Sequence record: ON529853.1
Length of the DNA: 64,000 nt
Reading direction: 5' to 3' (one strand)
The position numbers and the translations under genes were made by a program. Below, piece by piece: positions 955-22,537 of this stretch (positions within the stretch are counted from its first letter, which is position 1; each line of letters begins with the position of its first letter). The notes under the pieces are model-generated. The model ran no database searches. It saw only the letters and a list, made by a program, of their open reading frames with translations, and was not told where the DNA came from.

Positions 955-1008
955 GGGGCGTCTCCAGTTGCGATCCCGTATCCCTACAGGACGGAAGTTA
1001 ACAGGGGG

Positions 1009-1446
1009 TTAACCGGTCACGGAATCCGAGCGGTCGCGCAGGGCGTCGGCGTAGGTGTCGAACGGCTCCGATTCCGCCTCTTCCTCGCCGTCATACCAAT
1101 GGAACCGCTGCACGGCGTCCGCATCAGGCGTCGCGCCCGGATAGGTGCGCAGGAAGATTTGCAGGTCGTCCAGATCGTCGTCGTCGGGGTCCAGCGCCAG
1201 CGCCGGGGCGGCGGGAAGGGTCGGGACCACGCCGCGCGAATAGGCCTCGACGCAGACGCCGACGAAGGTCGAGATTTCGGTGGCCTGCCGCAGGAACAGG
1301 CGCTGATTGTCTTGGGGCAGGGCTTGGGCCACGGCCACGGTGAAGGCGTCGCCGCGCAGGCTCCAGACCAGTTCACTGAAGGTTTCGACGCCGTCGTCCA
1401 TATCGGCGTAACCGACGACGGTGTAAAAGGCGGGCGATTCAGCCAT
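1009..1446 (-). CDS. hypothetical acidic protein
   Basis: RBS and CtrA box; TAA stop lies inside next box. Confidence 0.8.
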   Translation of the reverse strand: MAESPAFYTVVGYADMDDGVETFSELVWSLRGDAFTVAVAQALPQDNQRLFLRQATEISTFVGVCVEAYSRGVVPTLPAAPALALDPDDDDLDDLQIFLRTYPGATPDADAVQRFHWYDGEEEAESEPFDTYADALRDRSDSVTG

Positions 1447-1628
1447 GGGGCTCTCCTGTTTCGTTGGGGATACCCTAGCCCGAAGAAGTTAACAATAGGT
1501 TAAGACCGCGAGGTTTCTTCGGGCGGGCGTTAACCTTAACACGGCGTTAACCTTAACGGCGGACGGGCAGGGGCGGCCCCGGCCTAGAGCCGGGGCGCCG
1601 GGGCGGCGTCATTCCGCCCCGTTCCCTG

Positions 1629-1826
1629 TCAGCCTTCGTCGGGCTGATAATCCGGGTCGGGATCGAAGCGACCGCAGAACGTGCGGCCCTCTGATTCCAT
1701 ACCGGGCTCAAAAGCCCGGATGACGTACAAGGCCCGGCCCACGGTGTTGAGGTTGAGCACCGCGACCGGGGCGCCGCCCCGGTTCGCCGTGCGTTGCGCG
1801 TCGCGCTTGACCTGATCGAGGGTCAT
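1629..1826 (-). CDS. hypothetical protein (MTLDQVKRDAQ...)
   Basis: In-frame ATG just after stop of 1829-2197. Confidence 0.65.
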   Translation of the reverse strand: MTLDQVKRDAQRTANRGGAPVAVLNLNTVGRALYVIRAFEPGMESEGRTFCGRFDPDPDYQPDEG

Positions 1827-1828
1827 GC

Positions 1829-2197
1829 TCAGCCCTCGAAACGGTCGTGGACCGAAACCGGGCCGCCGAAGCGCGGGCCGCCGAGACGTTCCACGGCTTC
1901 GTTGAAACGGCTGTCCGTCGTTCCGGCGTAGTTGCCGCCCGCCATCAGCCAGCGCGTGTCCATCTCGCCGGTGTCCGTCGCCGGGACGATCTTGACCGCG
2001 CCGCGCACGTTGCCCTTGACCAGATAGGCGGCGGGGCGCGACGGGTTGGGGTCGAACGGGCCGTCGACGTTGACCAGGGTCAGTTGCGCGACCTTGGACG
2101 ACACGCCGCCGTTGGTGCAGTCCACCGAGTCCAGCTTCAAAATGTCGCCCGGTTGGTCGGCGGCGCAGCGGCGGTAGATGGAAACGATCAGGCCCAT
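1829..2197 (-). CDS. conserved-looking phage hypothetical protein
   Basis: RBS and CtrA box; DCTNGGVSS...MAGGNY..TDSRF motif. Confidence 0.8.
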   Translation of the reverse strand: MGLIVSIYRRCAADQPGDILKLDSVDCTNGGVSSKVAQLTLVNVDGPFDPNPSRPAAYLVKGNVRGAVKIVPATDTGEMDTRWLMAGGNYAGTTDSRFNEAVERLGGPRFGGPVSVHDRFEG

Positions 2198-2270
2198 GGG
2201 GCTCTCCTTTGTTTGACCTCCACACCATAGCGTGAAGGTCTTAACAAGAGGTTAACGCCGGAAAGATTTT

Positions 2271-2438
2271 TCAGGCGGCGGAAAACAGCGCAGCGGTCGA
2301 GACGCCGCCCAGCAGGGCGCGGCGGAACGGGTCGAGCGCGAGCGCCGGGGCGGCCTTGGCCTTGCGGGCGCGCGGCTTGGGCGCGGCCTTCGCGGCGGCG
2401 GGCTTGCGGGCGCGGGGCGTCTTCGGGGTGTCGGTCAT
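2271..2438 (-). CDS. small basic Ala/Lys/Pro-rich protein with C-terminal RRALLG hydrophobic segment
   Basis: Own variant box at 2497; start MTDTPK. Confidence 0.55.
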   Translation of the reverse strand: MTDTPKTPRARKPAAAKAAPKPRARKAKAAPALALDPFRRALLGGVSTAALFSAA

Positions 2439-2597
2439 GGCGAGGCCTTTCGTTGGGGGTGAAGTCCAGAGCCCCCCCCAGCCTCGCACGGAGTCCTTAC
2501 CAAAGGATTAACGGGCCAGGCGCCGCCGGGCGGGCGTTAACCTTAACGGATCGGGCGGGACCGTTAACCACGGCGGGGGTCCGCCGTGGTCGGGAGG

Positions 2598-3849: not shown

Positions 3850-4045
3850 GTCTGTGTTCCCTTGTTGGTGAGATCACTATAGCGGCCCGGTTCTTAACAA
3901 CAAGTTAAAATCGAAATAAATCGTGCCTAACGAAAAGGGTTAATTTTTCGGGGCCGGGCGTTAACCTTAACAAGAGGTTAACGGCTGTTAAGGTTAACGC
4001 CAGCGGGTCAGGCGAGACCGCCCCGGCGAACCGGGGCGGCGGGGG

Positions 4046-4669
4046 TCAGCCCAGTTGAATCGCGCCGTCGTCGGCGGTGTAGAGGTAGACTTCTTCGGGG
4101 TATTTTTGCGCGGCTTCCGTCAGGGCCTCGCCTTCCGCTTCGGGCCAGTCGCCGTCTTCCCAATAGCCGACGCCGCTGCGGGTCCGGGTCATGTAGAAGT
4201 CATAACCGGCTTGCTCCTGCACCGAACAGTTGACCGCGCGGACCTCGCCCGACGCGTAGGCCGCTTCCAAGGTGGCGGCGTTCTCGCGTTGGAAGCGTTC
4301 GCAATCCGCGACCATTTCGCGCAAGCCGTCCGGGTGAATCTCTTCCGGGCAAATCGTGTTGTCGCGGTCGTGGTCCGCGTTCGGGTGTCCGGTCGGATAC
4401 TCGGCGCCGTTGGAGGCGGCGGCGGCGATATAGCCGCGCGTGAACGGATCGCACGGCGTCAGGATCGACCAGGACTCGGCCTCATAGGCGGCGCGCGCCT
4501 CGGCGTAGGCCTCTTCGAGGGCGTCCACAACGGCGCGGGCTTCCGCGACCAGAGCGGCGGGTTCCGTGTGCGGATATTGCATCACCGTCAGGGCGGCGAT
4601 CTGCTGCGCCGTCAGGGGGCTATAGTCGGGGACCGTGGTTTCGGCGGTCAGCTTGGCGAGGGTCGTCAT
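4046..4669 (-). CDS. hypothetical protein (GYDFYMTR..GVGYW..GDW motif)
   Basis: GGAG RBS before MTTLAKL; CtrA box 4714. Confidence 0.75.
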   Translation of the reverse strand: MTTLAKLTAETTVPDYSPLTAQQIAALTVMQYPHTEPAALVAEARAVVDALEEAYAEARAAYEAESWSILTPCDPFTRGYIAAAASNGAEYPTGHPNADHDRDNTICPEEIHPDGLREMVADCERFQRENAATLEAAYASGEVRAVNCSVQEQAGYDFYMTRTRSGVGYWEDGDWPEAEGEALTEAAQKYPEEVYLYTADDGAIQLG

Positions 4670-5041
4670 GGGGTTGCTCCCGTTGATGTGCGAGCATATT
4701 GCACGCCAAGGTCTTAACAACAAGTTAACGCCGCGCAGATTTTTCGGCGGGCGGGCGGGCGTTAAGGTTAATGCGAAAGGCTCGCAAGGGGCGGCGTTAA
4801 CCTTAACAGAATCGTCCGAAAATTAACCATGCCCGTTGACGTTTTCTTAACGACTCGGCGCTAGGCTCAAGGGTTCCATAGCCACGCCTCGCGCCGGGTC
4901 CGACCCCCCGCGCGCGGTGTCACGCGCTCGCCTCGACCGGGGCGGGGCGCCCGGCCACGCGCCCCGACATCGGGAGGCGCGAGCCCGCCCGGCTGGGCGG
5001 TCGATCGGTCATGCCGGCGACCGCCAGGGCGGGGGTGCGTC

Positions 5042-5185
5042 GAATCGAAACGGCGTCAGGTCAAGTCGGCCGGCGTCAAAACGAAACGGCGTCAGGTCAA
5101 GTTCGCCCGCGTCAAATCTAAATGGCGTCAAGTCAAGTTCGCCAGCGTCAAATCGAAACGGCGTCAGGTCAAGTTCGCTCGCGTC
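5042..5185. repeat. Repeat family A, left copy: four tandem 36-bp units rich in CGTCAA/CGTCAG
   Basis: Units start 5042, 5078, 5114, 5150. Confidence 0.9.
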
Positions 5186-5265
5186 AAGTTTGATCCGCCA
5201 GGACCTGAGCGAAAACGAAGACGCCCGGCGCGCATGAAAGCGGCCGGGCGTCAGGGGTCATCCGT

Positions 5266-5334
5266 TCAGAAACAGAGGCCCACAATCATGAGGGCGAAAA
5301 CGATCTTGGACGCGGAACAGAGTTTATCGAGCAT
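5266..5334 (-). CDS. 22-aa hydrophobic peptide MLDKLCSASKIVFALMIVGLCF
   Basis: AAGGAAG RBS, downstream hairpin 5221-5251, paralogue at 23063. Confidence 0.6.
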   Translation of the reverse strand: MLDKLCSASKIVFALMIVGLCF

Positions 5335-5358
5335 ATTCAGGGGCTTCCTTCTACTAAG

Positions 5359-5502
5359 GAGTCACGCCCGGTAGTAAACGTGACAGGTCGTGGGAACGCT
5401 ACAGAGAGAAATCTCGCGAGTCATCGTCTGTGTGTAACGTGACTGAACTATTTGTTAATCCGGTCGGGGGATTGGAGTCACGCCCGGTGGGAAACGTGAC
5501 TC
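5359..5502. repeat. Repeat family B, left copy: three dyads GAGTCACG-N11/12-CGTGAC(TC)
   Basis: Start 5359, 5418, 5475; the last is a perfect inverted repeat. Confidence 0.85.
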
Positions 5503-5515
5503 CGGGGTTTTGGCG

Positions 5516-6739: not shown

Positions 6740-7219
6740 TCAGGGGATCGGGGTCAGTTCGTCCTCGAAGGCGTCGTATTCGACGCCCGCGTCGTCTTTG
6801 ACCCGATAGGCGGGGCCGACCTCGACCGCCTCGTCCTCGTCCAGCGGGCGGATGACCTCGACCCGGTGATAGGGCGGCGTCGTGGCCTCCGGGCAGGTCG
6901 AGGCCCAGTGCAGAACGTCGCCGGGCGCGAAGGCGAAGTCGGGTTCGGGCTCGGATTCGTCGTCGCCGAACGACGGCTCCTGTTCCGTTGAGGAGTCCTC
7001 GATCTGTGTTCCAGGCCAGGACACGCCGGGATCGGCCAGAGACCGCAAACAGCCGTCAATGTTCGGGGCGGTGCGGGTGCCGATGTAGTCGCTGTAGCAG
7101 TCCGGTTCCCCGACCGGCTCGGACGGGTTGTCCCGGCGCCATTGCTGCAAGGCGGCGTCGAACAACTCGCGCGGATTGGTCACGACGACGCTGATGGATA
7201 TGGTGTAGGCGCGGCTCAT
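6740..7219 (-). CDS. hypothetical protein, possible C-terminal SH3/Tudor-like barrel
   Basis: RBS and CtrA box 7269. Confidence 0.75.
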   Translation of the reverse strand: MSRAYTISISVVVTNPRELFDAALQQWRRDNPSEPVGEPDCYSDYIGTRTAPNIDGCLRSLADPGVSWPGTQIEDSSTEQEPSFGDDESEPEPDFAFAPGDVLHWASTCPEATTPPYHRVEVIRPLDEDEAVEVGPAYRVKDDAGVEYDAFEDELTPIP

Positions 7220-7288
7220 GGGGCTCTCCCGGCTGGGGTGTTGATGACCTGACCCTACAGGTCAGGTCTTAACAAACGGTTAACAGGA

Positions 7289-8041
7289 TCAGGATTTGAC
7301 AGGGACGATCAGGTCGAACAGTTCGGCGTAGTCGTCGCCCTCGGGCGCCTTCTCCTCGGCGTTCAGCTTCTCGTCATAGGCCTTCGCCGCCGCGACGGTG
7401 CGGTCGTAGGCGTCCGCCTTGGCCTTCATGTCCGAGGCGTCCGTGCCGCCCGTCGCGGCGATCAGGGCGAGGCGCGCGGCTTCGGGCAGGGCGTCCCAGG
7501 CCTGATCATCCAGATCAAAGGCGCCCATGGCGCGGCTGGCGTCGTCGCGCTCGGCCTCGTCCAGTTCAGCCACGCGGGCTTGCAGCCGGGCGCGCTGTTC
7601 GGCGTCGGCCAGATTGGCGACGATGAAGCGCAGGTCCACCGGCTTGATCCCGTTGCCGCGCAGGAAGGCGACGACACGATCCCAGTCCGCGACCTCGGCC
7701 AAGGCGTCGCGCGGTTGCAGATCGTCCAGGCGGGCGGCGTGGTTGTCGCTGGCCTCGGACAGCATGGCGACCAGGGCCGGCGCCGTGGCGTCGTCCAGCA
7801 GGGCGGTGGGGCGGGCCAGGACCTTGCAGTGGGCTTGGTCGATGTCCCAGTCGATGGTTGAGGTCAGGGTCAGTTCCGACATGGCGGTCCAACCGTCTTG
7901 CAGGTCGGTGTCTTGCGCGAGCAGGGCGCGGGCGGCGACGACGGCCTCCTGCCCGCTCGCGGCCTCGACCGCGACGACCTTGAAGGCGTTGAGGGTGGCG
8001 TAGGCGGTGATGTGGAAGCTGTGCAGGGCGGGGCTGGACAT
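7289..8041 (-). CDS. hypothetical protein
   Basis: RBS and CtrA box 8086. Confidence 0.8.
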   Translation of the reverse strand: MSSPALHSFHITAYATLNAFKVVAVEAASGQEAVVAARALLAQDTDLQDGWTAMSELTLTSTIDWDIDQAHCKVLARPTALLDDATAPALVAMLSEASDNHAARLDDLQPRDALAEVADWDRVVAFLRGNGIKPVDLRFIVANLADAEQRARLQARVAELDEAERDDASRAMGAFDLDDQAWDALPEAARLALIAATGGTDASDMKAKADAYDRTVAAAKAYDEKLNAEEKAPEGDDYAELFDLIVPVKS

Positions 8042-8200
8042 GGTGTCTCCTGTCGTTGCGTTGAGGCTGTTCTAGCAGCCATTCCTTAACAAGAAGTTAA
8101 CGCCAGTCAATTCTTTTCAGGCGGCGGGGCGACCGCCAGGCCCGTTAACCTTAACGCGAGCGGGTCGCAGAACGCCCGGCCAAAGCCGGGCGCCTTTGAC

Positions 8201-8929
8201 CTAGACGGGTTTCAGGTCGTTGAGATCGACCGCGCCGATCTGATGCGTCTCGCGGGCGGTCTTAAGGATGGATTTCAGCAGGGTCGGGGTCGCCATGCCG
8301 CCGCGCAGAGCCTGAGCGGCGAAGTGCTCGGGGTCGGTGCCGGGGCGGGCGGCGATGATCGCGGCCAGACAGGCGGTCATCGCTTCCTTGGCCCCGCTCA
8401 CGGCGGCGGACGCGGCGGCGGTCAGGGCTCCGGCATAGGCGCCGTCCGCCTCCTCCGACATCTGCGTCAGCTTTTCGGCCTCCTCCAACAGGCGACAGGC
8501 CTCATGGGCGGTGATGGCGACGGCGGTCGGCAGTTCCGACACCGAAGCGGCGTGAACTTGCAGCAGACTGACGACCTCGTCCACATCGCTGAGGCAGACG
8601 GCGCCGTTGTCGGCCCAGTTGGACGCCAGCACCCGGAAGGCGGCTTCGGCGGCGTAGTGTTCCAGCGTCGAGCCGCTGGCGATGTCGTCGGCGTAGCGGG
8701 CCAGCGCCGTCGTCAACGGGTCGCCGCCCTGGGCCAGGGACAGGGTCAGGAAGTCAGGGCTCACCATGAACTCGGTGACGCTGCCGTCGTCGTCATCGGC
8801 GGTCAGGCCCTCGGCTTCGCGATAATGCTGGATGGCGAATTCCAGCGCGCGTTTGACATGATCGACGCTGAAGGCGCCGCCTTCGATCTGAAGGCCGACG
8901 ATGAAGTTGACGGTGGTGGGGTCTGACAT
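8201..8929 (-). CDS. hypothetical protein
   Basis: RBS and CtrA box 8974. Confidence 0.8.
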   Translation of the reverse strand: MSDPTTVNFIVGLQIEGGAFSVDHVKRALEFAIQHYREAEGLTADDDDGSVTEFMVSPDFLTLSLAQGGDPLTTALARYADDIASGSTLEHYAAEAAFRVLASNWADNGAVCLSDVDEVVSLLQVHAASVSELPTAVAITAHEACRLLEEAEKLTQMSEEADGAYAGALTAAASAAVSGAKEAMTACLAAIIAARPGTDPEHFAAQALRGGMATPTLLKSILKTARETHQIGAVDLNDLKPV

Positions 8930-9062
8930 GGTGTCTCCTGTCGTTGTGCTGATCCTGTTCTAGCACCGATTCGTTAACAACAAGTTAACGGCGCGAGGAA
9001 ACTTCGGCGTTAACCTTAACGCGCCGGGATCGCAAAGCGCCCGGCCGAAGCCGGGCGCTGCG

Positions 9063-9866
9063 TCAGGCGGGGACGCGGGAGAAGTCGGGGCTGTCGCCGT
9101 CCGCGACCGTCAGTTCGATCCACGACATACGCTCCATGTGGCGTTTGACGGACCCCTCCGACGACAGGCCGTTGAGGATATAGGACATGGCGAGAATCTT
9201 CCCCGCCTCGCTGGCGCGGGCGCTGATCTGGGTGCAGTAGGACGAATCCTCCACGAACTCCCAGACGTCGTTAATCCGGCGCTCGACGGCGACCCGCATC
9301 AGGGGCTCGTCGCCGCTGTCGGTCGGGTCATAGTCGCCCGACGCGCCTTCGCCCTCGAAGTCCAGAATCACCGCCACGTCGTCGCGTTCCAGGCGCAGCG
9401 ACGGGAAGCTGATCACGTCCGGCGCCGGGGGCGCATCCGGCAGCAGGTCGGCGGCGGCGACCGCCCAGTCTTCCAGCAGGGTCGAAGCCTCGACCATGGA
9501 CGTTCCGGCCTGACGCGCGTCGGTCAGGGCCTGAACGTGGGCGACGCCGGCTTCCAGCGCCGCTTCCAGATCGACCGGGAACGCGCGGTCGCCATCATAG
9601 TAGGGGCGGAACAGGGCCGTTGCGCGGTCCAGTTGGGCTTCCACCTTGGCGACATGATGTGAGGGGATGATGATTTCGCCGAGGCTGTCGCCCTCCATCG
9701 CCAAGGTCATATAGGGCTGCGAGCCGTCCTTGGGGAAGCTGAAACGGACGGTCAGGTCGCTGTCTCCGCTTTCGTCCGTGAGGTCCATGAACAGTTCGCA
9801 GCGGATGTCCTTGAATTCGGCGTCGTTCTCGACGTAGGCCGGCGCGGGGATTTTCTTCTCTTGCAT
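9063..9866 (-). CDS. hypothetical acidic protein
   Basis: RBS and CtrA box 9912. Confidence 0.8.
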   Translation of the reverse strand: MQEKKIPAPAYVENDAEFKDIRCELFMDLTDESGDSDLTVRFSFPKDGSQPYMTLAMEGDSLGEIIIPSHHVAKVEAQLDRATALFRPYYDGDRAFPVDLEAALEAGVAHVQALTDARQAGTSMVEASTLLEDWAVAAADLLPDAPPAPDVISFPSLRLERDDVAVILDFEGEGASGDYDPTDSGDEPLMRVAVERRINDVWEFVEDSSYCTQISARASEAGKILAMSYILNGLSSEGSVKRHMERMSWIELTVADGDSPDFSRVPA

Positions 9867-10004: not shown

Positions 10005-10319
10005 TCAGCAGACGGTGTTCGCGCCGACCGTTTCGGAGACGAGGGTGGGCTCTTCGCCATCGTCGGCCTCGGCGGCGGTCGGGTCCATGTCGTCGTAGTC
10101 GGCGGCCATCCCCTCGACCCATCCTTCCAGGGCGTTGACGGCGCCGGCGAGGTCGCCGCCCGACCAGTTCTCCACCACGCCCTGCGCCAGCATCACGCCC
10201 TCGGCGGCGTCCTGATAGAGGCTCAGCAGCAGGGCCGTGGACAGGGTGACGGTCTTTTCGCCCGCCGCCATGGCGGCGTCGAGGACGGAGTCGATGGTCG
10301 GTTCAGCGGCGTCGGTCAT
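10005..10319 (-). CDS. hypothetical acidic protein
   Basis: RBS and CtrA box 10364. Confidence 0.8.
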   Translation of the reverse strand: MTDAAEPTIDSVLDAAMAAGEKTVTLSTALLLSLYQDAAEGVMLAQGVVENWSGGDLAGAVNALEGWVEGMAADYDDMDPTAAEADDGEEPTLVSETVGANTVC

Positions 10320-10374
10320 GGGTGTCTCCCGGTGGTTGATGGTGTGACCCTACAGGCCAGAGGTTAACAAACGG

Positions 10375-10794
10375 TTAACAGGTGCGAAGTTCGGCGGTCG
10401 GCGTTTCGACGCCGTCCCTGTAGGCGGTAGAGCCGAGGATGCCGAGGATCGGGTTATAGTCGCCGCGCTCTTTCTCGGCGGCGTAGAAGCGTTCGAGAAT
10501 GGCGGGCTGGGCGGCGAAGCGGTTGTTCCGCCACAGGGGCGTCAGTTTCGGCGGCAGACCGTCGAAGATGAACCAGCCGCGCTCATTCGTCGCGCCGCCC
10601 ATCCAACGCCGTTTACGGCTGATGTAGATTTCACGCTCGCCGTTGCCCGCCAGCAGCCAGACCGTTCGCCCTGGCAGGGCCAGCGACAGGTCGCGCAGGG
10701 CGTCGCGCATCATCTGTTCCGACAGGGCGACTAGGCGGATTTCCGCCGCCTCGACCGCTTCGAGGGCGACGACGAAGGGATCGCGGCGGCTCAT
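10375..10794 (-). CDS. hypothetical protein
   Basis: ATGA overlap with upstream gene; stop inside next box. Confidence 0.7.
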   Translation of the reverse strand: MSRRDPFVVALEAVEAAEIRLVALSEQMMRDALRDLSLALPGRTVWLLAGNGEREIYISRKRRWMGGATNERGWFIFDGLPPKLTPLWRNNRFAAQPAILERFYAAEKERGDYNPILGILGSTAYRDGVETPTAELRTC

Positions 10795-12411: not shown

Positions 12412-13122
12412 TCAGGGCTGATCGGGTTCGGCCCCATTCATGTGATCGACCGCCCCCGCCCAGGCCTCGTCCTCGCTGACGGCCCAGACCACTTCATCGC
12501 CCTCGGGGTCGATGGCGGTGAAGGGGAGCGGGTCGCCCTCCTTCTCGGAGAAGACGACCTGATAGCCCGCCGCCGAGGCGGTGGTCTCGTTGTCGTCCTC
12601 GTCGTCTTCGCTCCTGAAGAGGCCGTCGCCCGCCAGCAGGTCGTCAATCGCCTGATTGCCGCGCTCGGACAGGATGTCTTCGATGCGGCGGGCGTTGTCT
12701 CGCAGCCAGCCTTCCGGGTCGTCGCCGCCGTAACGGTCGGTCAGGTCGTCGGTGGTGAAGACGACCGGCACGGCGCCGGCGGCGCGGATGGCCTCGGTCA
12801 GGGTATAGACATCGACCTCGGCCCAGGTCGAGACGATCTCGGCGCGGAAGTCGATTTCGGCCTCGGCCAGCTTTTCCTGTTCGAGGTCGGACAGGTCCGC
12901 GAAAGATTCGATCTCGGCCAGCGGCTTGTTCGTCGCGATTCCCAGATAGGCGAGGGCGTCGCGCAGGGCTTCGGCCTCGTCCAGACGACCCGACATATGG
13001 TCGAGCACGGCCTGACGCCGGGCGATCTCGGCGGCGGGGCGCGAGGCGTGGGCGGTGACGTCAGGCGCGCGGCCGGTGGCCTCGACGGAAAGCTGGAAAA
13101 GCTGGATGCGGGCGGTGGTCAT
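12412..13122 (-). CDS. hypothetical acidic protein
   Basis: RBS and CtrA box 13173. Confidence 0.8.
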   Translation of the reverse strand: MTTARIQLFQLSVEATGRAPDVTAHASRPAAEIARRQAVLDHMSGRLDEAEALRDALAYLGIATNKPLAEIESFADLSDLEQEKLAEAEIDFRAEIVSTWAEVDVYTLTEAIRAAGAVPVVFTTDDLTDRYGGDDPEGWLRDNARRIEDILSERGNQAIDDLLAGDGLFRSEDDEDDNETTASAAGYQVVFSEKEGDPLPFTAIDPEGDEVVWAVSEDEAWAGAVDHMNGAEPDQP

Positions 13123-13183
13123 GACGGGTGTCTCCCGATGAATGTCGATGGGTTGACCCTAGAGGTCAGAGGTTAACAAGAGG

Positions 13184-13291
13184 TTAACCGATGGTGTAGC
13201 GGCGCCAGATTTGTTGCCCCAGCATGACGGCGAACACCGCCAGCATGACCAGCACGGTCACGACCAGGGTCCGGGGTCCGGGGCGGGCCAT
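13184..13291 (-). CDS. 35-aa single-TM peptide MARPGPRTLVVTVLVMLAVFAVMLGQQIWRRYTIG
   Basis: TGATG coupling with upstream gene; stop inside next box. Confidence 0.6.
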   Translation of the reverse strand: MARPGPRTLVVTVLVMLAVFAVMLGQQIWRRYTIG

Positions 13292-13912: not shown

Positions 13913-14524
13913 TCAGACGTAGGCGGCGGTTTCGGCCAGCATCTCCGTCAGGGTCTCAGCGGAGATCATGGCGGCGAGTTGGTAGCGGCGGGCCGCAGCG
14001 CGGTAGGCGGCGGCGGTCTCTTTGGTCGGGTCATCGTTGAAGGCGGCGCGCGCCTCGTCCAACGTCGGCTCGGGGGCGTCGCGGTCCTCGCGAATCGTCA
14101 ACAGCGGTTCGTCGCGGCCGATGGCGTAGAGGAAGACCGACACGTCGCGGTCGGGCTGGGCGAAGCCCTGCTGATTCCAGATCATCCCGGCGAAGTTCTC
14201 GGCGGCCTCGCGATCCAGCGTGTCGGCGATCCGGTTGTCCAGCACCGTGTCCGTGCGGTGGTCGAAGGCGACGACGCGGAAGCCGGGCAGCGCGGCGGGC
14301 TGCACCGCGAACTCGTAGCGGGCGTCTTCTTCGGCGATCCAGCGGCTGATGTCTTCGATGGTCGGTTCCAGATCGTCCGGGGCGCCATTATCGGCTTGCA
14401 GTTCGCGCACGACGTCGTTCAGGGCTTCGGCCTCGCTGACATGGATCGAGGCGCCGAGGCCGCCCGAAGTGGACGTGACCAGTATGACCAGGGCGGGCAG
14501 GCCGGAGATGGCGGAAAGCTTCAT
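13913..14524 (-). CDS. hypothetical protein
   Basis: GGAGA RBS before MKLSAIS; CtrA box 14566. Confidence 0.75.
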   Translation of the reverse strand: MKLSAISGLPALVILVTSTSGGLGASIHVSEAEALNDVVRELQADNGAPDDLEPTIEDISRWIAEEDARYEFAVQPAALPGFRVVAFDHRTDTVLDNRIADTLDREAAENFAGMIWNQQGFAQPDRDVSVFLYAIGRDEPLLTIREDRDAPEPTLDEARAAFNDDPTKETAAAYRAAARRYQLAAMISAETLTEMLAETAAYV

Positions 14525-14666
14525 GGGGGTCTCCTTCGTTGAGGCTCCCTTGTCGCACGGATTCATTAACAAGAGGTTAACGCGCCGCTTTTATTTTCCG
14601 TTAAGGTTAACGGCCGGGCGGGGGGCCGAAAAAGCCCGCCGGGGGAGACAACCCGGCGGGCTCGGT

Positions 14667-15223: not shown

Positions 15224-15225
15224 GG

Positions 15226-15600
15226 TCAGTCCTCATCCTCAAAGACCAGATCGAACTCGCTGTCCGGGTCGTTGAACTCCAAGGCCGTGGATTCGGATAC
15301 GGTGGTGGTGCGCGAGGCGCCGAAGAGACCCATGGCCTCGCCTTGCGAGACGACCGAATAGGTCATGCGGACATCGGTGATGCTGGCGAAGTCGCCGAAG
15401 TGCTGATCGCGGCGGACCAGCCCCTCGATCGCGGTGACTTTGGCCGAGGCCAGCAGTTCACGGCGAAGCGACTGGACGGTGTCGCGGGCCTCGGCCGAGC
15501 CGTTGAACGGACGGACCAGTTCCAGCGTCTCGATGGCGCTGATCGTCTGATTCATCCAGCCGGTCCCGACCAGATAGAGTTTCAAGGCAGCGTGGCTCAT
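15226..15600 (-). CDS. hypothetical protein
   Basis: RBS and CtrA box 15650. Confidence 0.8.
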   Translation of the reverse strand: MSHAALKLYLVGTGWMNQTISAIETLELVRPFNGSAEARDTVQSLRRELLASAKVTAIEGLVRRDQHFGDFASITDVRMTYSVVSQGEAMGLFGASRTTTVSESTALEFNDPDSEFDLVFEDED

Positions 15601-15660
15601 GCGGGGTCTCCTTCCCGGTGGTCGATGGTCTATCCCTACAGGACAGGCGTTAACAATCGG

Positions 15661-16284
15661 TTAACGCGCGATGTCTCTTTCGCCCGCCTGCCATGCGTCG
15701 GCGAGGTCGTGGATTTGCTCGGCGGACAGGCCGGGGTGCTCCATGCCGTTGGTCAGGATTTGACCGATGTCGTTGTCGTCGGGGGCGACCCGACCGGCGG
15801 CGAGTTCACGCGCCAGCAGGCGCAGGCCCGCCATGGCGGCGTCGTATTCACGCGGGCTGAGGCCCAGGACCGACGCGTCGCGGGGGTCGTTCAGACCCTG
15901 GGCGATGACGGTCGCCTCGGCGCGGGACAGGACGCCCTGCCCCTCGACCAGGGCCAGGATGAAGTCCGAGCGCGAGGTCTGCGTGGCCTTCAACCCGTCG
16001 CGGTGCTCCTCCCACAGGGCGGCGGCGTCGGACAGGCTGAGGCCGCCGCTTTCCAGCCGGTCAATGTCGAACGACAGGGCCAGATGCTCGGCGCGGCGCA
16101 GGGCGGCCGACAGGTGGTCGAAGTTGTCGTCGGCCTCGCCCTGATCCACCACCTGATAGGGCGAGCGATCCGGGTCCACCACGCCCGTCCAGTCGATGAC
16201 CGAAAACGCGCCGGTCGGCCCGGTGCGCTCGGCGGCGGTGCGCAGGTTGGCGCTGATCTCGTTGAGATGGATGGGCGCAGGCAT
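15661..16284 (-). CDS. hypothetical protein
   Basis: RBS and CtrA box 16330; stop inside next box. Confidence 0.8.
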   Translation of the reverse strand: MPAPIHLNEISANLRTAAERTGPTGAFSVIDWTGVVDPDRSPYQVVDQGEADDNFDHLSAALRRAEHLALSFDIDRLESGGLSLSDAAALWEEHRDGLKATQTSRSDFILALVEGQGVLSRAEATVIAQGLNDPRDASVLGLSPREYDAAMAGLRLLARELAAGRVAPDDNDIGQILTNGMEHPGLSAEQIHDLADAWQAGERDIAR

Positions 16285-16340
16285 GGGGCGTCTCCCGTGT
16301 TTCGATGATCTGACCCTACAGGACAGATGTTAACAAGAGG

Positions 16341-16883
16341 TTAATGGTAGGCGTCGATTTCCGACAGCGGCGGCAGGATGCGGAAGGGGATCGCCTCGCC
16401 GCCGTTCGCCTTGGCGAAGGCGTTCTCATAGGTCTTGTAGAGGCGGTCGCGGCGCCCGTCCGTGCGCAGGGTCCACTTGGTGGGGTGGCCGGGTTCCCAA
16501 TTCTGATTGTGAGCGGCCTCGACGGCGGCGATGAAGTTCGCGACGGTCATTCCGTCATGGTCCTGCCGGGTCGGGGAGATGCTGTTCAGTTCGTGCCAGG
16601 GGTGGTCGTCGGCGTAGTGGGCGCCGCCGCCGTCGCTGGACCACGAAGCCGATTCCATCCCCAGCATGACGGGCAGGAAGTCGTCGCCGTCGCCGGTCAG
16701 CAGGGAACAGACCTTGACCGCCTGCTCCATCGTCATCAGGCCGTCCAGAATGAATTCCAGATGCTCCTTATAGTTGGAAGCGTCGCGATACATATAGGAC
16801 AGGCGCGTGTTCTGTCCCGGATGGCCCGCCCAGACGGACGGGTTGATCTGGTGCGGCAGGGCGGCGGGGGTCTGGTCGGTCAT
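16341..16883 (-). CDS. hypothetical protein (YMYRDASNYK motif)
   Basis: RBS and CtrA box 16936; stop inside next box. Confidence 0.8.
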   Translation of the reverse strand: MTDQTPAALPHQINPSVWAGHPGQNTRLSYMYRDASNYKEHLEFILDGLMTMEQAVKVCSLLTGDGDDFLPVMLGMESASWSSDGGGAHYADDHPWHELNSISPTRQDHDGMTVANFIAAVEAAHNQNWEPGHPTKWTLRTDGRRDRLYKTYENAFAKANGGEAIPFRILPPLSEIDAYH

Positions 16884-16946
16884 GGCGTCTCCTCCATGGG
16901 GTGATCTCGATTGAGACCACCCTACAGGACAGAAGTTAACAAGAGG

Positions 16947-17429
16947 TTAATCGGCGGCGGGAATTCTGAGGTCCACGCCGAAGACGTGAACCAGTTCGCC
17001 GGTCGGCTTGCGCACGATCACGCCCAGCCACTGCTCCTCGACAAAATAGCCCGTCACCTCGGCGTCGCCGATGCGATTGACGGCGACGCGCACGGTCGCG
17101 CCGACCGGGGGCGGGGAGTCCTCGCCGGACCACAGGACGGAACCGGCGAGGCCCGGCGGCAGCAGTCGGCCGTCCTTCCAGCGCGCCAGTTCATAGGCGG
17201 GGACGTGGGGGCGCCACAGGGGGGCGTAGACCTCCATCAGCCACGTCGGGCCGTAGGTGTTGCGGATCGCGCGCAGCAGTCCGCCGTCCGCTTCCTGGGT
17301 GTCGCCGCCGGTCGCCCACAGGAGGGTCAGATGCTCTTTCCAACCGCCTTCGACCTTGGCGTATTTGTCGGCGAAGTTCAGCAGGGCGGCGGACGCCTCG
17401 GGCGTCAGGGCGGGGTAGGTGTCAGGCAT
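16947..17429 (-). CDS. hypothetical protein
   Basis: RBS and CtrA box 17473; stop inside next box. Confidence 0.8.
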   Translation of the reverse strand: MPDTYPALTPEASAALLNFADKYAKVEGGWKEHLTLLWATGGDTQEADGGLLRAIRNTYGPTWLMEVYAPLWRPHVPAYELARWKDGRLLPPGLAGSVLWSGEDSPPPVGATVRVAVNRIGDAEVTGYFVEEQWLGVIVRKPTGELVHVFGVDLRIPAAD

Positions 17430-17585
17430 GGGGCGTCTCCCTTGTTCGATGATCCCTTATAGCCACAATGTCTTAACAAAAGGTTAATGCCATGACAAGG
17501 GCGTGCGGGCGTTAACCTTAATGTGGCGTTAAGGTTAACGCGACCGGGTCGCAAGAAAGGTCCCCGGCCGAAGCCGGGGACGGGG

Positions 17586-18050
17586 TCAGGCGGCGTCCTT
17601 GTATTCGGGGAATTTGGCGATCAGGGCGGCGACCGTCTCCTCGACCGACTTCATGTTGGGGAAGTAGTGGTCGGCCGGATCGGCGAAGTCCAAGGCGAAG
17701 TCGCAGATGAAGGGGATCGCGTCCCACTGCCAGCAGCGGCAGCATTCGAACCAGTCGCGCCCGTCCTGATTGAAGGCGATCCACACCGCCTCGAAATAGG
17801 GGCCAAGGCGCATCATCACGTCGCGCATCTCGGCGGAGCCGTAGCCGTCCAAGGCGTCGTCCCAGCGCGCGTAGGCGGCCCGCCGCTCCTTGTCCTTGGC
17901 GCGCTGGTTGCGCGAATCGACGGACAGGGCGACATACTCCCACGCCGCCATGGACGCGTGGATCGCGGCAGACGGATAGCTGGCGCGCATCTTGCGATAC
18001 TTCTTGGCCGTGGGCGTGGGCTTGAACGTGGTGCGGTGCTTGTAGGGCAT
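17586..18050 (-). CDS. hypothetical protein
   Basis: GGAGA RBS before MPYKHRT; CtrA box 18095. Confidence 0.75.
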   Translation of the reverse strand: MPYKHRTTFKPTPTAKKYRKMRASYPSAAIHASMAAWEYVALSVDSRNQRAKDKERRAAYARWDDALDGYGSAEMRDVMMRLGPYFEAVWIAFNQDGRDWFECCRCWQWDAIPFICDFALDFADPADHYFPNMKSVEETVAALIAKFPEYKDAA

Positions 18051-19176: not shown

Positions 19177-19345
19177 GGGGTCTCCTCCCGTTGCTGACCC
19201 TCCCTGTATCGCATGAAGTTCTTAACAACAAGTTAACGACGTGATTTATTTCCGGCGGCGGGCGGCGGGCGTTAACCTTAACGCGCTGTTAAGGTTAATG
19301 CGAGCGGGTCGCGGAAGGGGCGCCCGGCCGAAGCCGGGCGCCGGT

Positions 19346-20260: not shown

Positions 20261-20270
20261 CGGGGCCTCC

Positions 20271-20468
20271 TTAGAGATGGATCGCGGCGTCGAACGCCTG
20301 GGATTGCAGTTTCTTGGCGGCTTCGGCCTCGGCGGGGTAGAGCCGGGCCAGGCCGTCAAAGCGTTCTTTCTGATGCGAGCGCTCGCCCTCGGCGGCGGTC
20401 ATGTGCATGACCTCGCCCCACAGGTGGGCCATTTCGAGGATCAGGACAGAGCGGCGGGAAGCGTTCAT
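20271..20468 (-). CDS. hypothetical protein
   Basis: RBS and CtrA box 20510. Confidence 0.75.
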   Translation of the reverse strand: MNASRRSVLILEMAHLWGEVMHMTAAEGERSHQKERFDGLARLYPAEAEAAKKLQSQAFDAAIHL

Positions 20469-20520
20469 GGCGGTCTCCTTGTTGACCTCGCCACCCTAGC
20501 AGCGAGGTCTTAACAAGAGG

Positions 20521-20766
20521 TTAACAGCGGCGGAGCATTTCACGCATCAGGGCTTCCTCGTTGCGGGCGATGTCCAGCGCGGCGCGGTCGTGGCCTTGCT
20601 CATGCGCCTGCTTGGCCTGCTGTCGGCAGATGTCCTGGCGCTTGCGGATGTCAGCCTCCGACAGGGTGCGGAACAGGGCGTCGGCCTCCTGATCGACCTT
20701 GACGGTCCAGTGCTGCTGCGATTCGTCGTCGGCGCGGAGATGGGCGGGGAAGTAGGCGTCGGCCAT
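20521..20766 (-). CDS. hypothetical protein
   Basis: GGAGG RBS; stop inside next box. Confidence 0.75.
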   Translation of the reverse strand: MADAYFPAHLRADDESQQHWTVKVDQEADALFRTLSEADIRKRQDICRQQAKQAHEQGHDRAALDIARNEEALMREMLRRC

Positions 20767-20774
20767 GGGTCCTC

Positions 20775-21086
20775 CTAAAGGTTCTGGTCGCGGACGCGGG
20801 CGAGCGCGGTGTGGACGGCGGGGAGCAGGGTCGGCGTCTGGCCGCTCATCCAGAACTCGGTCGCGTCGCCCTCGCCCATCTGATGCGAGACGCCGTAGAA
20901 GCAGGCGCCGCGCGGGGTGTCGTCATTGGGGCATTGGACCCAGACCGGCAGGTCTTGGCCGTCGCGGGTGAGGACCAGCGCGTCATCCGTGCTGCCGTCG
21001 TCGGCGACCTCATAGCGGGCCGACAGGCCGGCAGCGGTCAGCAGGGTCATGGCGGCGGTCCAGGGGGCGCCTTGGGGAAGGGGCAT
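20775..21086 (-). CDS. hypothetical protein
   Basis: RBS and CtrA box 21128. Confidence 0.75.
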   Translation of the reverse strand: MPLPQGAPWTAAMTLLTAAGLSARYEVADDGSTDDALVLTRDGQDLPVWVQCPNDDTPRGACFYGVSHQMGEGDATEFWMSGQTPTLLPAVHTALARVRDQNL

Positions 21087-21221
21087 TGCGATCTCCTTTG
21101 TGCTGACCCTGTTCTAGCAATGATTCGTTAACAAGAGGTTAACGTCCTGCGCGGTGGTCCGGGGCGTTAACCTTAACAGGGTCAGGCCGGAAAACGCCCC
21201 GGCCGAAGCCGGGGCGCAGGG

Positions 21222-22112
21222 TCAGCCGACCCGCTCCTTCTTGAGGTGGTAGGACCGACCGTGGGTCATCAGGGAGCGGAACCCGCCCAACCGGGTCTCG
21301 CCCGGCGCCGGGGTCACGACATAGACCGGATCGAGGAAGTCGTCGTTCCAGCGGATCACGTCGTCGAACGCCTGCGGCGTGTGCAGCACGACCTTATAGG
21401 GTTCGCCTTCGGGCGCGACCAGATCGGTGGTGTGGTCCTCGTCGCCCTTGTAGCCGAACACCGACAGGACCGCGACCGGCAAGCCGTCGTCGAGCGTCGA
21501 GAGGTCTTGCAGGGCGCGGGCCTCGGCCAGCCGCTTGTGCGGCTCATAGAGGGCGCAGTCGCGCTTGAGCAGGTCAGCGCGCAAGGCGACGACACGCTGG
21601 GGCGTCAGGTCCAGAGACGCGCAGGCCCCGATGACGACGCCGTAGATGAAGCCGAGTGCGTGCTGCGTGAGCGACACCATGCCGTCCATTCCCGCCGTCG
21701 CGACCTCCTGATTTTTCAGGCCGAACGCCGCCAGGGCGCCGGCGACGTCGCGGCACTCCTGCCGGGTCGGGGCGGTCTTGGCCTCGATGTGGAGGCGCAG
21801 GGTGTCGCGGGCCTTCATCAGGTCCACAATCGCCAGCGACAGGCCGGTGTAGCGTCCATCTTCGACCGGGGCGGGCTTGGGCTTCGGGGCCGGGTAGGTC
21901 TCGACGCACAGCAGGCGGGCGCGGGTCTCCTCGACCGTATAGACCTCGACCTGATAGGCCATGCCGAGCGCCACGCGCAGTTCGTTGCGGATCGCCAGAC
22001 CGGCCTCGGGGTCGGTGGTGGTCAGGCGCAGTTCGCCGATCCGGCGGTCCTCGCCCTGGGCGGGATGGCGGCGCGACAGTTCGAGGCGCAGGTCGTAGGG
22101 GGCGTCGGTCAT
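21222..22112 (-). CDS. hypothetical protein
   Basis: RBS and CtrA box 22155. Confidence 0.8.
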   Translation of the reverse strand: MTDAPYDLRLELSRRHPAQGEDRRIGELRLTTTDPEAGLAIRNELRVALGMAYQVEVYTVEETRARLLCVETYPAPKPKPAPVEDGRYTGLSLAIVDLMKARDTLRLHIEAKTAPTRQECRDVAGALAAFGLKNQEVATAGMDGMVSLTQHALGFIYGVVIGACASLDLTPQRVVALRADLLKRDCALYEPHKRLAEARALQDLSTLDDGLPVAVLSVFGYKGDEDHTTDLVAPEGEPYKVVLHTPQAFDDVIRWNDDFLDPVYVVTPAPGETRLGGFRSLMTHGRSYHLKKERVG

Positions 22113-22165
22113 CAGGGTCTCCCGTGGTTGAGCGTCCGGTATAGCCGGAAGGTCTTAACAAACCG

Positions 22166-22537
22166 TTAACGGCGGTCTTCGCTGAGGCGGGCGAGTATTT
22201 CGTCGTTCGTCATCGTGTCCAGCAGGTCTTGCACCTGACGGGCCTTTTCGTCCTCGACCGCCTGAGCCGCCGCCTTGGCGCGGCGATGCTCGGCCAGCGC
22301 CGCCTTGCCCGCTTCGGTCGTCTCCGGGTCGATGGTCATGTAAAGGCTGACCTCGCGGCCCTGCCGATCCACGAAGGTCAGGCTTCCAGACGGACGCACC
22401 TTGACGGTGAACATCGCCTTGACCAGCCGCTCGGCGGTCTCTTGACCGAAGTCGCCGCCGAAGCTGCCGCCCGCCGCCTTGAGGGTGTTGTCGCTCTTGA
22501 GGCGGGTGTGATAGCCGATGTTCTTGTAGGTGTGCAT
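22166..22537 (-). CDS. hypothetical protein
   Basis: GGAG RBS before MHTYKN; stop inside next box. Confidence 0.75.
   Translation of the reverse strand: MHTYKNIGYHTRLKSDNTLKAAGGSFGGDFGQETAERLVKAMFTVKVRPSGSLTFVDRQGREVSLYMTIDPETTEAGKAALAEHRRAKAAAQAVEDEKARQVQDLLDTMTNDEILARLSEDRR

Follow-up and report, generated by a model that had tools for sequence, protein, structure and literature searches.

The 64,000-nt stretch analyzed here (the window; identical in sequence to bases 1-64000 of Brevundimonas phage vB_BpoS-Bambus, ON529853.1) raises the question of why several of its small genes end inside the CtrA-type box of the next promoter. The original prediction took these ends to suggest repeated crossover at or next to the box, reminiscent of integron cassettes. 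Bambus is a Brevundimonas giant phage with a 348-kb genome and a relative of phiCbK. It is a jumbo siphovirus of the subfamily Dolichocephalovirinae, to which the phiCbK-like phages also belong, and its host is an alphaproteobacterium.

Gene junctions in the CtrA-box array

The genes concerned belong to a small-gene array that spans ~38 kb across the record origin and includes ~50 genes with their own CtrA-box promoter; of 74 TTAA-N7-TTAA matches found by scanning 344 kb of the genome (all but 314000-317999), 73 fall within it. The window has 31 promoter-like boxes for 41 genes, each box with a ribosome-binding site and a start codon downstream of it. The box (TTAAC-N6-GTTAA) occupies the -35 position of its promoter, with the proximal half-site ~8-9 nt upstream of a GCTA/CTAG-type -10 element (alignment of 50 promoters). 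The phiCbK boxes at 2594 and 8835 (gp005 and gp018) share this layout, and CtrA binds and activates the promoters of both genes (Mascolo et al., 2022, PMC9437464); the Bambus box promoters are presumably CtrA-dependent in their own host. The phosphorylated-CtrA binding and CtrA-dependent transcription reported in that study concern phiCbK, vB_BsubS-Delta, and Cp1R7A-A1 only, and stop codons (0 occurrences) and cassette shuffling at CtrA sites are absent from it. The array resembles the clusters of CtrA sites in the terminal-repeat regions of phiCbK-like phages in lying by the terminase gene and in combining small genes of unknown function with TTAA-N7-TTAA sites; there are, however, just 3 exact boxes in the phiCbK repeat, compared with ~50 such promoters in Bambus.

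The usual stop of an array gene is TGA or TAG, after which come a terminator hairpin and one or two 12-mers (consensus GTTAA(CC/GG)TTAA), which when paired form 12-6-12 perfect palindromes (e.g., 22987-23015). The array in the window has 19 terminator hairpins and 24 12-mers, and the terminator module is missing upstream of about one fifth of the promoters. At eight junctions in the window the upstream gene ends in the box instead (Table 1). All eight stops coincide with the low-coordinate end of an annotated minus-strand CDS; as predicted, all are TAA, and in all eight the TAA makes up bases 2-4 of the promoter-distal TTAA; the overlap comes to 4 nt if the wobble T of the last codon is counted. 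The next start codon follows 52-63 nt downstream, a distance taken up by the box, the -10 element, and the ribosome-binding site.

Table 1. Box-terminated genes, short junctions, and cassette boundaries in the window.
Feature	Coordinates	Strand	Description
Box	998..1012	(-)	Promoter of gene 445..954; stop 1009-1011 of gene 1009..1446 within distal TTAA 1009-1012
Box	10364..10378	(-)	Promoter of gene 10005..10319; stop 10375-10377 of gene 10375..10794
Box	13173..13187	(-)	Promoter of gene 12412..13122; stop 13184-13186 of 35-residue gene 13184..13291
Box	15650..15664	(-)	Promoter of gene 15226..15600; stop 15661-15663 of gene 15661..16284
Box	16330..16344	(-)	Promoter of gene 15661..16284; stop 16341-16343 of gene 16341..16883
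Box	16936..16950	(-)	Promoter of gene 16341..16883; stop 16947-16949 of gene 16947..17429
Box	20510..20524	(-)	Promoter of gene 20271..20468; stop 20521-20523 of gene 20521..20766
Box	22155..22169	(-)	Promoter of gene 21222..22112; stop 22166-22168 of gene 22166..22537
Short junction	2241..2273	(-)	TGA of gene 2271..2438, 15 nt upstream of box 2241-2255
Short junction	7269..7291	(-)	TGA of gene 7289..8041, 5 nt upstream of box 7269-7283
Cassette	15661..16344	(-)	Box-to-box: promoter, gene 15661..16284, stop in box
Breakpoint	4019-4059		Terminator hairpin
Breakpoint	9055/9870		Whole spacer
Breakpoint	14522-14541		Ribosome-binding site/ATG
Breakpoint	15664/16302		Box-to-box
Breakpoint	17541/18125		In 12-mers
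Breakpoint	19283-19317		In 12-mers

None of the eight junctions includes the 12-mer or a terminator-like or attC-like hairpin, and their best 40-nt hairpins have a median of -10.6 kcal/mol, vs. -24.2 at the 19 full spacers. The prediction that they would have neither hairpin nor 12-mer holds for 12-mers and terminators, but in several short junctions the -10 element is flanked by the arms of an inverted repeat (-19 to -23 kcal/mol after 20521 and -18 kcal/mol after 7289, with another downstream of 2271). Nor are there just eight such genes or two discrete types of junction, as proposed. Ten are found genome-wide, the additional two at ~346905 and ~341280 (L006 28906 and L006 23281), past the record origin but in the same array; and the 40 junctions in 1-24000 are of four kinds: 19 full spacers, 8 with the stop in the box, 11 operon-type (genes overlapping or with a gap of at most 10 nt), and 2 short ones with their own TGA. 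In one of these last two, at the end of gene 7289..8041, the box TAA comes two codons after the TGA in the same frame, making a tandem stop; in the other, the TGA of gene 2271..2438 falls within an A-rich CTGAAAAATC element. TAA is used by 19 of 71 genes inside the array, vs. 9 of 108 outside, and 10 of the 19 are embedded in boxes.

Conservation and reading frame

With one gene from Domovoi (21632) and two from phiCbK (gp011 and gp019), the ten Bambus cases give 13 box-terminated reading frames, among which no sequence similarity was found; they thus represent 13 unrelated gene families. Third-position GC of 0.78-0.93 over the last 40 codons marks these frames as coding, and their orthologues are conserved in 4-6 other phages. 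Papperlapapp, Marchewka, Kabachok, and Domovoi all retain the arrangement wherever the junction is orthologous, despite differing last residues; it is old and stable. The last codon of gene 10375..10794 is TGT, CAT, or AAT among these siblings, and gene 16341..16883 ends in ...DAYH or ...FAD, both stopping on the box TAA. At the 1009 junction, conserved in four siblings, the last residues vary as well; in Papperlapapp and Domovoi the box has decayed while the TAA is retained. The Bambus and Kabachok versions of 22166..22537 have tails (EDRR and APSR) running 4 residues past the conserved domain, and in Papperlapapp a 63-residue extra gene (39581) lies between this gene and the box, ending on the same box TAA.

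The sister phages Gurke, Kikimora, and CcrSC use TTGACA promoters (~50 in the Gurke clade, plus 4 of the CtrA-box type, vs. 51 CtrA-box promoters in Bambus). Here too stops can overlap the promoter: the TGA within TTGACA ends a gene at Gurke 26275, Kikimora 26335, and CcrSC gp018, and at Gurke 28463 and 35755 the -35 element is inside the reading frame. Four of the box-terminated genes can be compared between the two groups. Gene 20521..20766 ends in ...MLRRC in all seven phages, whether a CtrA box or TTGACA follows (in Gurke and Kikimora, TGA, then an A-rich element, then TTGACA). The C-termini of the other three are shifted by 2-4 residues: the Gurke and Kikimora orthologues of 10375..10794, for example, extend 3 residues further to a TGA followed by a terminator, while the Gurke-clade orthologue of 13184..13291 is 2 residues shorter and also ends in TGA. 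The three differing C-termini indicate that these junctions have been remodelled, whether by deletion, insertion, or replacement. The original prediction proposed this comparison, with shared C-termini to be read as compaction rather than recombination; adjustment at the box is indeed seen in three of the four genes, though not in 20521..20766, but a crossover inside the box would also leave the C-terminus unchanged, so that the comparison does not discriminate between the two.

All 13 frames end on the first half-site; none ends on the second or reads through, a bias with P = 1.2e-4 even against a 50:50 expectation. These frame statistics, together with the third-position GC and the conservation of orthologues, oppose chance or an annotation artefact as the source of the overlaps, and this explanation is rejected. 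With a third-position GC of 0.61, the sole candidate exception to the frame rule, 23646..23990, is non-coding. The bias may come from avoidance of the TTA codon, which does not occur among the 6,164 codons of the array genes; in the other genes of the window it occurs just 3 times in 10,704 and is rarer than any other sense codon. Three phage tRNA-Leu genes were found, with anticodons gag, caa, and cag. Either of the other frames through the box would force a TTA codon and an added tail, which would leave the single frame seen, although a forced four-residue tail might be harmless.

Cassette gain and loss

Six cassette gains or losses with overlapping homology at a module were found among the five sibling phages (Table 1). 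Gene 15661..16284 is part of one, which Bambus, Marchewka, and Kabachok have but Papperlapapp and Domovoi lack. Its upstream edge is box 16330..16344 and its downstream edge box 15650..15664: homology stops exactly at 15664, the overlapping homology in the two promoters comes to 43 nt, and the hybrid junction is made up of the upstream box and the downstream leader. Crossover at the box, as originally suggested, is therefore borne out in this one case; the remaining breakpoints are in 12-mers, a spacer, a terminator, and a ribosome-binding site/ATG. Overall, at least five kinds of module contain breakpoints, as do gene interiors, and the crossover zones share 13-140 nt; the box is one of several modules used for crossover, not a special site.

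Such a spread is what recombination between homologous copies of any repeated module would produce. It fits shuffling like that of the PeSL elements of T4-type phages, which are mobile regulatory cassettes (Arbiol et al., 2010, PMC2839356; Comeau et al., 2014, PMC4122927), and not site-specific recombination. As with PeSLs, a variable region holds small genes of unknown function set between dozens of near-identical promoter-plus-stem-loop modules, and close relatives differ by whole-gene gain or loss with crossovers inside the modules. In T4-type phages the crossovers fall between the -10 element and the SD or ATG, and PeSL mini-circles have been described (Arbiol et al., 2010, PMC2839356); in Bambus they run from box to leader, or fall in the ribosome-binding site/ATG, the 12-mers, or the terminator. 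No circle junctions were found in assembled contigs of metagenome runs, a kind of contig that drops rare variants. The Bambus modules differ in having CtrA-box promoters where the T4-type ones are sigma-70 early promoters, in their extra 12-mer elements, and in that one fifth of the junctions have no stem-loop and overlap the upstream stop. Cassettes are presumably exchanged by a homologous recombination pathway.

In integrons, cassettes are promoterless, are expressed from one common promoter, and carry at their 3′ end an attC site, an imperfect palindrome of roughly 60-140 bp that folds as a hairpin. The crossover occurs at one fixed position in the site and is catalyzed by an IntI-type tyrosine integrase, a protein of ~320 residues with an IntI-specific insertion. 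The Bambus array recalls this arrangement in its small genes in one orientation, in stop codons that can fall in a conserved 3′-end element, and in whole-gene gain or loss at that element. In an integron-like exchange, genes would move as cassettes whose stop falls in the recombination site, with the GTTAAC-containing boxes or the palindromic 12-mer pairs as sites for a small phage tyrosine recombinase. No recombinase is annotated in the window, in agreement with the original prediction. The genome-wide search that it called for yields a single annotated tyrosine recombinase (all but 314000-317999 covered): BAMBUS_03590 (195586..196260; PF00589, E = 1.6e-19), 224 residues long and comprising just the catalytic core. 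The gene belongs to the core set of phiCbK-like, Lacusarx, and Ruegeria phages and has no assigned function (PMC3556154). Its presence, the perfect palindromes of the paired 12-mers, and the two cassette changes that break at 12-mers and one at a box favor such an exchange. However, the gene is ~175 kb away from the array and scores far under every curated Xer or integron-integrase cutoff (best matches XerC, 45 bits, and XerD, 38 bits, vs. 335 and 330). Breakpoints are spread over terminators, a whole spacer, a ribosome-binding site/ATG, and gene interiors, with no single fixed point; the cassettes bring their own promoters, with no attI site, common promoter, or attC-like hairpin in the array and no IntI-type integrase beside it; and the same stop overlap occurs at the TTGACA promoters of relatives without the box. 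An integron-like exchange is thus very improbable, the features that define one being absent, and the array resembles such systems only loosely.

Possible origins of the overlap

The overlap is probably a matter of tight gene packing at junctions without a terminator, where the upstream frame reaches the promoter module and uses a stop found there. Lacking the terminator module, a frame would end on the first stop offered by the AT-rich promoter module, the TAA of the distal TTAA, much as in ATGA start/stop overlaps. A crossover between two such promoters would then add or remove a gene while leaving the neighbor's stop intact, by ordinary homologous recombination between repeated regulatory modules, as in T4 PeSLs. 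Selection for compactness is not obviously strong, since spacers of 130-200 nt are tolerated elsewhere, but these appear to be filled with functional modules.

Two other accounts are less likely. The point at which translation ends might itself matter for expression, for instance by keeping ribosomes off the -10 inverted repeat (RNA processing or folding), or by tuning an internal promoter. The register is strictly conserved, and the inverted repeats tend to be stronger in short-junction than in full-spacer promoters (Mann-Whitney p = 0.035); but this trend is weak, and absent at 13184, 10375, and L006 23281, and the Gurke clade tolerates frames across the entire -35 region, making a functional overlap rather unlikely. 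It is slightly harder still to credit a purely neutral ratchet, in which small deletions shrink terminator-less spacers until the box absorbs the stop, beyond which further shrinkage would damage the protein or the promoter. The tandem stop at 7289 is a presumed intermediate in such a process; at 22166 the 63-residue gene has been lost and the frame now reads a remnant up to the box TAA; and at 1009 the TAA has outlasted the box in two siblings. Alone, however, the ratchet predicts ends on the second half-site about as often as on the first, and none was seen among the 13. It therefore needs a frame constraint such as TTA avoidance, which merges it with the packing explanation favored here.

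As packing, the Bambus junctions would join other overlaps of coding and signal sequences, such as ATGA or a stop in a -35 TTGACA: the same few bases do double duty, the signal sequence sets the register, and the arrangement recurs independently in unrelated genes. They differ in that the signal is a half-site of a response-regulator binding box, and in that the limit to one frame may go back to a codon absent from these genes. Two genes on either side of a box-embedded stop probably share a transcript, and a CtrA-dependent internal promoter would raise expression of the downstream one.

Anatomy of the stop-in-box junctions

All eight genes that had been predicted to end inside the promoter of the next one (1009, 10375, 13184, 15661, 16341, 16947, 20521, and 22166; array genes are named by their low coordinate) do so. 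Each named stop is the end of an annotated CDS, each is TAA, and in each the TAA is bases 2-4, on the coding strand, of the promoter-distal TTAA of a TTAA-N7-TTAA CtrA-type element (the box), the first T being taken from the last sense codon of the upstream gene. The start codon of the next gene lies 52-63 nt past the stop, beyond a -10-like CTAG or TGTAGGG and a ribosome-binding site of GGAG type. Genome-wide there are ten such promoters, these eight and two in the stretch before the record origin (L006 28906 and 23281; genome ~346905 and ~341280). No Pfam domain was found in the seven of the eight window genes that were searched.

The DNA belongs to Brevundimonas phage vB_BpoS-Bambus (Dolichocephalovirinae; 348,100 bp; host B. 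pondensis LVF1), to which the first 20 kb of the window are 100% identical from position 1. A scan of 344 kb of this genome (all but bases 314000-317999) places 73 of 74 box matches in a single array of small genes running from ~335 kb through the record origin to ~26 kb; about 50 of the array's matches have a promoter layout. Window genes 445 to 23598 are all on the minus strand and all annotated as hypothetical. Two divergent boxes lie back to back at 23646-23704, between 23128..23598 (-) and 23751..23996 (+), the array's only plus-strand gene. There is also an 846-nt gap without genes (4670-5515), with about four tandem copies of a ~33-nt unit at 5040-5200 (core ggcgtcaggtcaagt) and inverted copies of gagtcacg...cgtgact at 5350-5500.

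TTAA is nearly absent from coding sequence in window 1-24000: 11 occurrences fall fully within a CDS, eight of them at stop-in-box junctions, and 125 are in the 5.4 kb of non-coding DNA. TAA makes up 27% of stops within the array vs. 8% elsewhere, box-embedded stops providing most of the excess.

The original prediction recognized two discrete junction types. Its core observation holds; the restriction to two is a simplification, because the 40 junctions in window 1-24000 form four classes (see table). The GC hairpins of the full spacers (median -24 kcal/mol) were located by a hairpin-energy scan, used instead of a built-in terminator scan that recovered just 2 of 19 obvious terminators, a low yield due to their short T-tails. 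A promoter subclass specific to stop-in-box junctions, with a CCTGTAGGGT -10 element, was considered and rejected: similar -10 elements follow full spacers in the array's other half. In several terminator-less promoters the -10 element is flanked by inverted repeats, with CTAG or TGTAG in the loop; such repeats are somewhat stronger there than in full-spacer promoters (p = 0.035), and phiCbK gp020 has one as well.

The stop-in-box arrangement is probably a way of joining genes compactly and without a terminator: the stop comes from the promoter half-site, and the register is set by a codon constraint. It would be an economical link between a gene and the CtrA-type promoter that follows.

Features of the Bambus array and its counterparts in related phages (window coordinates unless a phage or stretch is named)
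Feature	Location or gene	Phage	Description
Junction, full spacer (n = 19)		Bambus	TGA/TAG, strong GC hairpin, 1-2 GTTAA(CC/GG)TTAAC 12-mers, box
Junction, stop-in-box (n = 8)		Bambus	TAA within distal half-site
Junction, operon-type (n = 11)		Bambus	genes overlap, or gap <=10 nt
Junction, short, own TGA (n = 2)	7289, 2271	Bambus	stop slightly upstream of box
Inverted repeats around -10 element	20469-20510, 7220-7268, 2198-2240, 955-997	Bambus	hairpin energies -10 to -19 kcal/mol
12-6-12 palindromes	22987-23015, 19272-19298, 17512-17538	Bambus; also Gurke, Kikimora, CcrSC terminal repeat	
C-termini among siblings	1009		VTG, ITG, ITY, DSF
C-termini among siblings	10375		C, H, or shorter ...KAN
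C-termini among siblings	16341		...DAYH or ...FAD
Extra stop-in-box	21632..21970	Domovoi	gene absent from Bambus
Extra stop-in-box	39581..39772	Papperlapapp	gene absent from Bambus
Extra stop-in-box	gp019	phiCbK	canonical box
Extra stop-in-box	gp011	phiCbK	GGTAAC box variant, in use elsewhere in phiCbK
C-terminus vs. Gurke/Kikimora	20521	all seven phages	...MLRRC end in common; differs only in promoter type and stop (TAA vs. TGA)
Counterpart of 20521		Gurke clade	stop, then A-rich element and TTGACA
C-terminus vs. Gurke/Kikimora	10375	Bambus	3 residues shorter; terminator after Gurke-clade stop
C-terminus vs. Gurke/Kikimora	22166	Bambus	4 residues longer; terminator after Gurke-clade stop
C-terminus vs. 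Gurke/Kikimora	13184	Bambus	2 residues longer; 12-mer spacer after Gurke-clade stop
Cassette	15661..16284	absent: Papperlapapp, Domovoi	box to box, 43 nt common; crossover between box and leader
Cassette	17586..18050	absent: Kabachok, Domovoi	12-mer to 12-mer, 18 nt common
Cassette	9063..9866	absent: Papperlapapp, Kabachok	breakpoint is whole spacer
Extra gene	19283-19317	Kabachok, Domovoi	breakpoint is 12-mer pair
Extra gene	4019-4059	Marchewka	breakpoint is terminator hairpin
Extra gene with own 3' stop-in-box promoter		Domovoi	flanked by repeated ribosome-binding site/ATG
Tyrosine recombinase BAMBUS_03590	genome 195586..196260 (L014 31586-32260), outside window	Bambus	224 residues, catalytic core only

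Reading frame and conservation

A TAA is available from the box in two of three frames; for the third, the -10 element of the common TGTAGGG promoter variant contains TAG. In each of the 13 reading frames that end in a box, the stop is in the first half-site; none ends at the second or reads through the box (first vs. second half-site at a 1:1 expectation, P = 1.2e-4). The single candidate exception, the reading frame 23646..23990, was set aside as non-coding (third-position GC of 0.61 vs. 0.87 for the annotated plus-strand gene). The alternative frames both meet TTA, as TTA-ACC-TCT-TGT-TAA or xTT-AAC-CTC-TTG-TTA-ACx. This codon does not occur among the 6,164 of the array genes and is the rarest sense codon in the other window genes (3 of 10,704); the three phage tRNA-Leu genes found have the anticodons gag, caa, and cag. 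Avoidance of TTA, together with the extra tail that would be forced on the protein, would limit viable junctions to one frame. In gene 7289 the box TAA is in frame two codons past the gene's own TGA, in Bambus and siblings alike with different intervening bases, and this tandem stop is likely an intermediate state. Most of the mystery of the TAA-in-box junctions is thereby removed, and the frame rule is open to a simple, testable account in terms of codon usage.

Among the six relatives of Bambus, four siblings (Papperlapapp, Marchewka, Kabachok, and Domovoi) share 88-96% DNA identity with it over aligned parts, while Gurke and Kikimora form a clade farther away. The TAA has the same position in the box at all orthologous junctions of the four siblings, although the last residues vary; behind 1009, two of the siblings (Papperlapapp and Domovoi) have lost the second half-site of the box, and the TAA is still the stop. 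Further cases occur at genes absent from Bambus and in phiCbK (see table); the Bambus homologue of gp011 (L006 27609..28028) has a full spacer and no stop-in-box. Tandem duplication was rejected as an explanation for the repeated junctions, the upstream genes having no mutual similarity at E < 1e-3 in pairwise comparison. Kept in the siblings and found at unrelated genes elsewhere, the arrangement has been stable and has also recurred independently.

Comparison with Gurke and Kikimora, proposed as a way to see whether C-termini are truncated or extended at the box, gave a mixed answer: 20521 has the same end, while 10375, 22166, and 13184 are shifted. In unrelated phages, the homologues of 22166 stop at about residue 118. 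The Papperlapapp orthologue has a TGA near this residue, followed by a 63-residue gene that uses the box TAA. The APSR tail of the Kabachok and Domovoi proteins aligns with bases past that TGA, which suggests that ~215 nt were deleted and that the frame then read remnant sequence as far as the box. The shifted C-termini and the remnant tail argue that junctions have been remodelled by small rearrangements, the frame being caught by the box TAA.

The region 20521-21086 itself contains two genes in Bambus and Marchewka (103 and 81 residues) and one of 158-165 residues in other phages (Papperlapapp L002 38026-38502, Kabachok L004 33455-33940, Gurke L007 31424-31900), with only the C-terminal 81 residues in common; the difference is a split or an N-terminal replacement.

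Gene gain and loss, and a candidate recombinase

Alignment of Bambus and its siblings revealed gains and losses of whole cassettes with overlapping homology at the joints (see table). Repeated crossover at or next to the box had been proposed; the joint of 15661..16284 runs from box to box, as this would have it, but the box is not a special site, the other breakpoints being in 12-mers, a spacer, a terminator, and a ribosome-binding site/ATG. Intragenic and operon-internal events are also present among the siblings. In the PeSL model of T4-type phages (PMC2839356), homologous exchange acts on repeated promoter/stem-loop modules, and its crossovers fall between -10 element and ATG. The breakpoint pattern of the array matches this model, with the box as one seam of several. 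Gene 16341 has an identical end whether its neighbor is 15661 or 15226: with a stop-in-box design, the upstream gene's stop therefore survives box-to-box exchange, and because such exchange spares both neighboring reading frames, the array is unusually tolerant of shuffling.

Assembled metagenome contigs, from which rare variants are dropped, showed no circle junctions. One wastewater contig lacks 17540-18161 and has 18 other letters in its place. Several short ones (runs X3 and X4) have either the 43-nt promoter module (16302-16344) or the 12-mer module (17505-17543) as their sole match and run on into unrelated sequence, which is consistent with other gene contexts for these modules in environmental relatives. 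The array is a clear non-T4 example of repeated regulatory modules as seams for whole-gene gain and loss, and its modules would depend on a host cell-cycle regulator.

The alternative is site-specific recombination. As predicted, there is no recombinase among the window annotations; the search of the genome (all but bases 314000-317999) found one annotated tyrosine recombinase, BAMBUS_03590. It matches PF00589 (E = 1.6e-19), scores far under the curated Xer and integron-integrase cutoffs, and belongs to the core gene set of phiCbK-like phages, Lacusarx, and Ruegeria or Rhodobacter phages. For its phiCbK counterpart, gp143, a role in resolving multimers from replication or recombination has been put forward (PMC3556154). 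No link between BAMBUS_03590 and the array was found. A 54-residue "integrase" annotated in the Papperlapapp array was discounted, its Bambus counterpart (L006 17983..18147) having no Pfam match. Paired 12-mers do form perfect 12-6-12 palindromes (GTTAACCTTAAC, six bases, GTTAAGGTTAAC), each with four TTAA and a central TTAA-N7-TTAA, and these are kept across genera, including where promoters are TTGACA-type; they could be the binding site of a dimeric protein, CtrA or a recombinase. For this reason a site-specific role keeps a small probability. It is nevertheless very improbable that the core-only recombinase acts on GTTAAC-based repeats (the 12-6-12 12-mer pairs, perhaps the boxes). If it did, the array of the terminal region would serve the virus as an integron-like platform that exchanges cassettes with their own promoters, and the stop-in-box junctions would be scars of precise exchange. 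Compact junctions with exchange at repeated modules are preferred here; the original observation is upheld, and its recombinational interpretation in part.

Phages of the phiCbK-like group have dense clusters of CtrA sites in their terminal-repeat regions, and CtrA binds and activates the gp005 and gp018 promoters (PMC9437464). Stop codons are not mentioned in that work, and the Bambus genome paper makes no mention of CtrA, promoters, or recombination; because both are silent on them, the stop overlap and module-mediated shuffling appear to be undescribed in this group. Both are variants of familiar phenomena.

Promoter types in Bambus and the Gurke clade

Window 1-24000 and L006 15500-30101 were compared with Gurke (L007 1-37000) and Kikimora (L008). 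The Gurke/Kikimora array is largely orthologous to that of Bambus, with terminators and 12-mers common to both. Bambus has 51 CtrA-box promoters and ~5 of TTGAC type, whereas in Gurke ~50 are TTGACA promoters, preceded by a conserved A-rich element, and just four have a CtrA box; CcrSC promoters are Gurke-like. At terminator-less junctions in these phages the stop may be a TGA within TTGACA (Gurke 26275, Kikimora 26335, CcrSC gp018) or immediately precede the A-rich element; Gurke 28463 and 35755 read across the -35 element and reach a TGA two codons on. The TGA of Bambus 2271 is inside an A-rich CTGAAAAATC element, which also precedes several boxes. As a general rule, then, a reading frame that no terminator follows runs up to or into the promoter module and ends on a stop codon contained in it.

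Such a wholesale swap of regulation, in sister phages that share a host strain, may be of more interest than the stop overlap. The Bambus/Gurke pair is a natural experiment for asking whether early-gene expression depends on the host cell cycle. The clades also differ in gene order (window 6740-10794 vs. Gurke L007 16491-20495). In Gurke the 10375-like gene comes after the 7289-like gene, and the 22548-like gene, upstream of the 22166-like gene in Bambus, is on its downstream side; judged by gene order, shuffling between the clades is extensive, past simple gains and losses.
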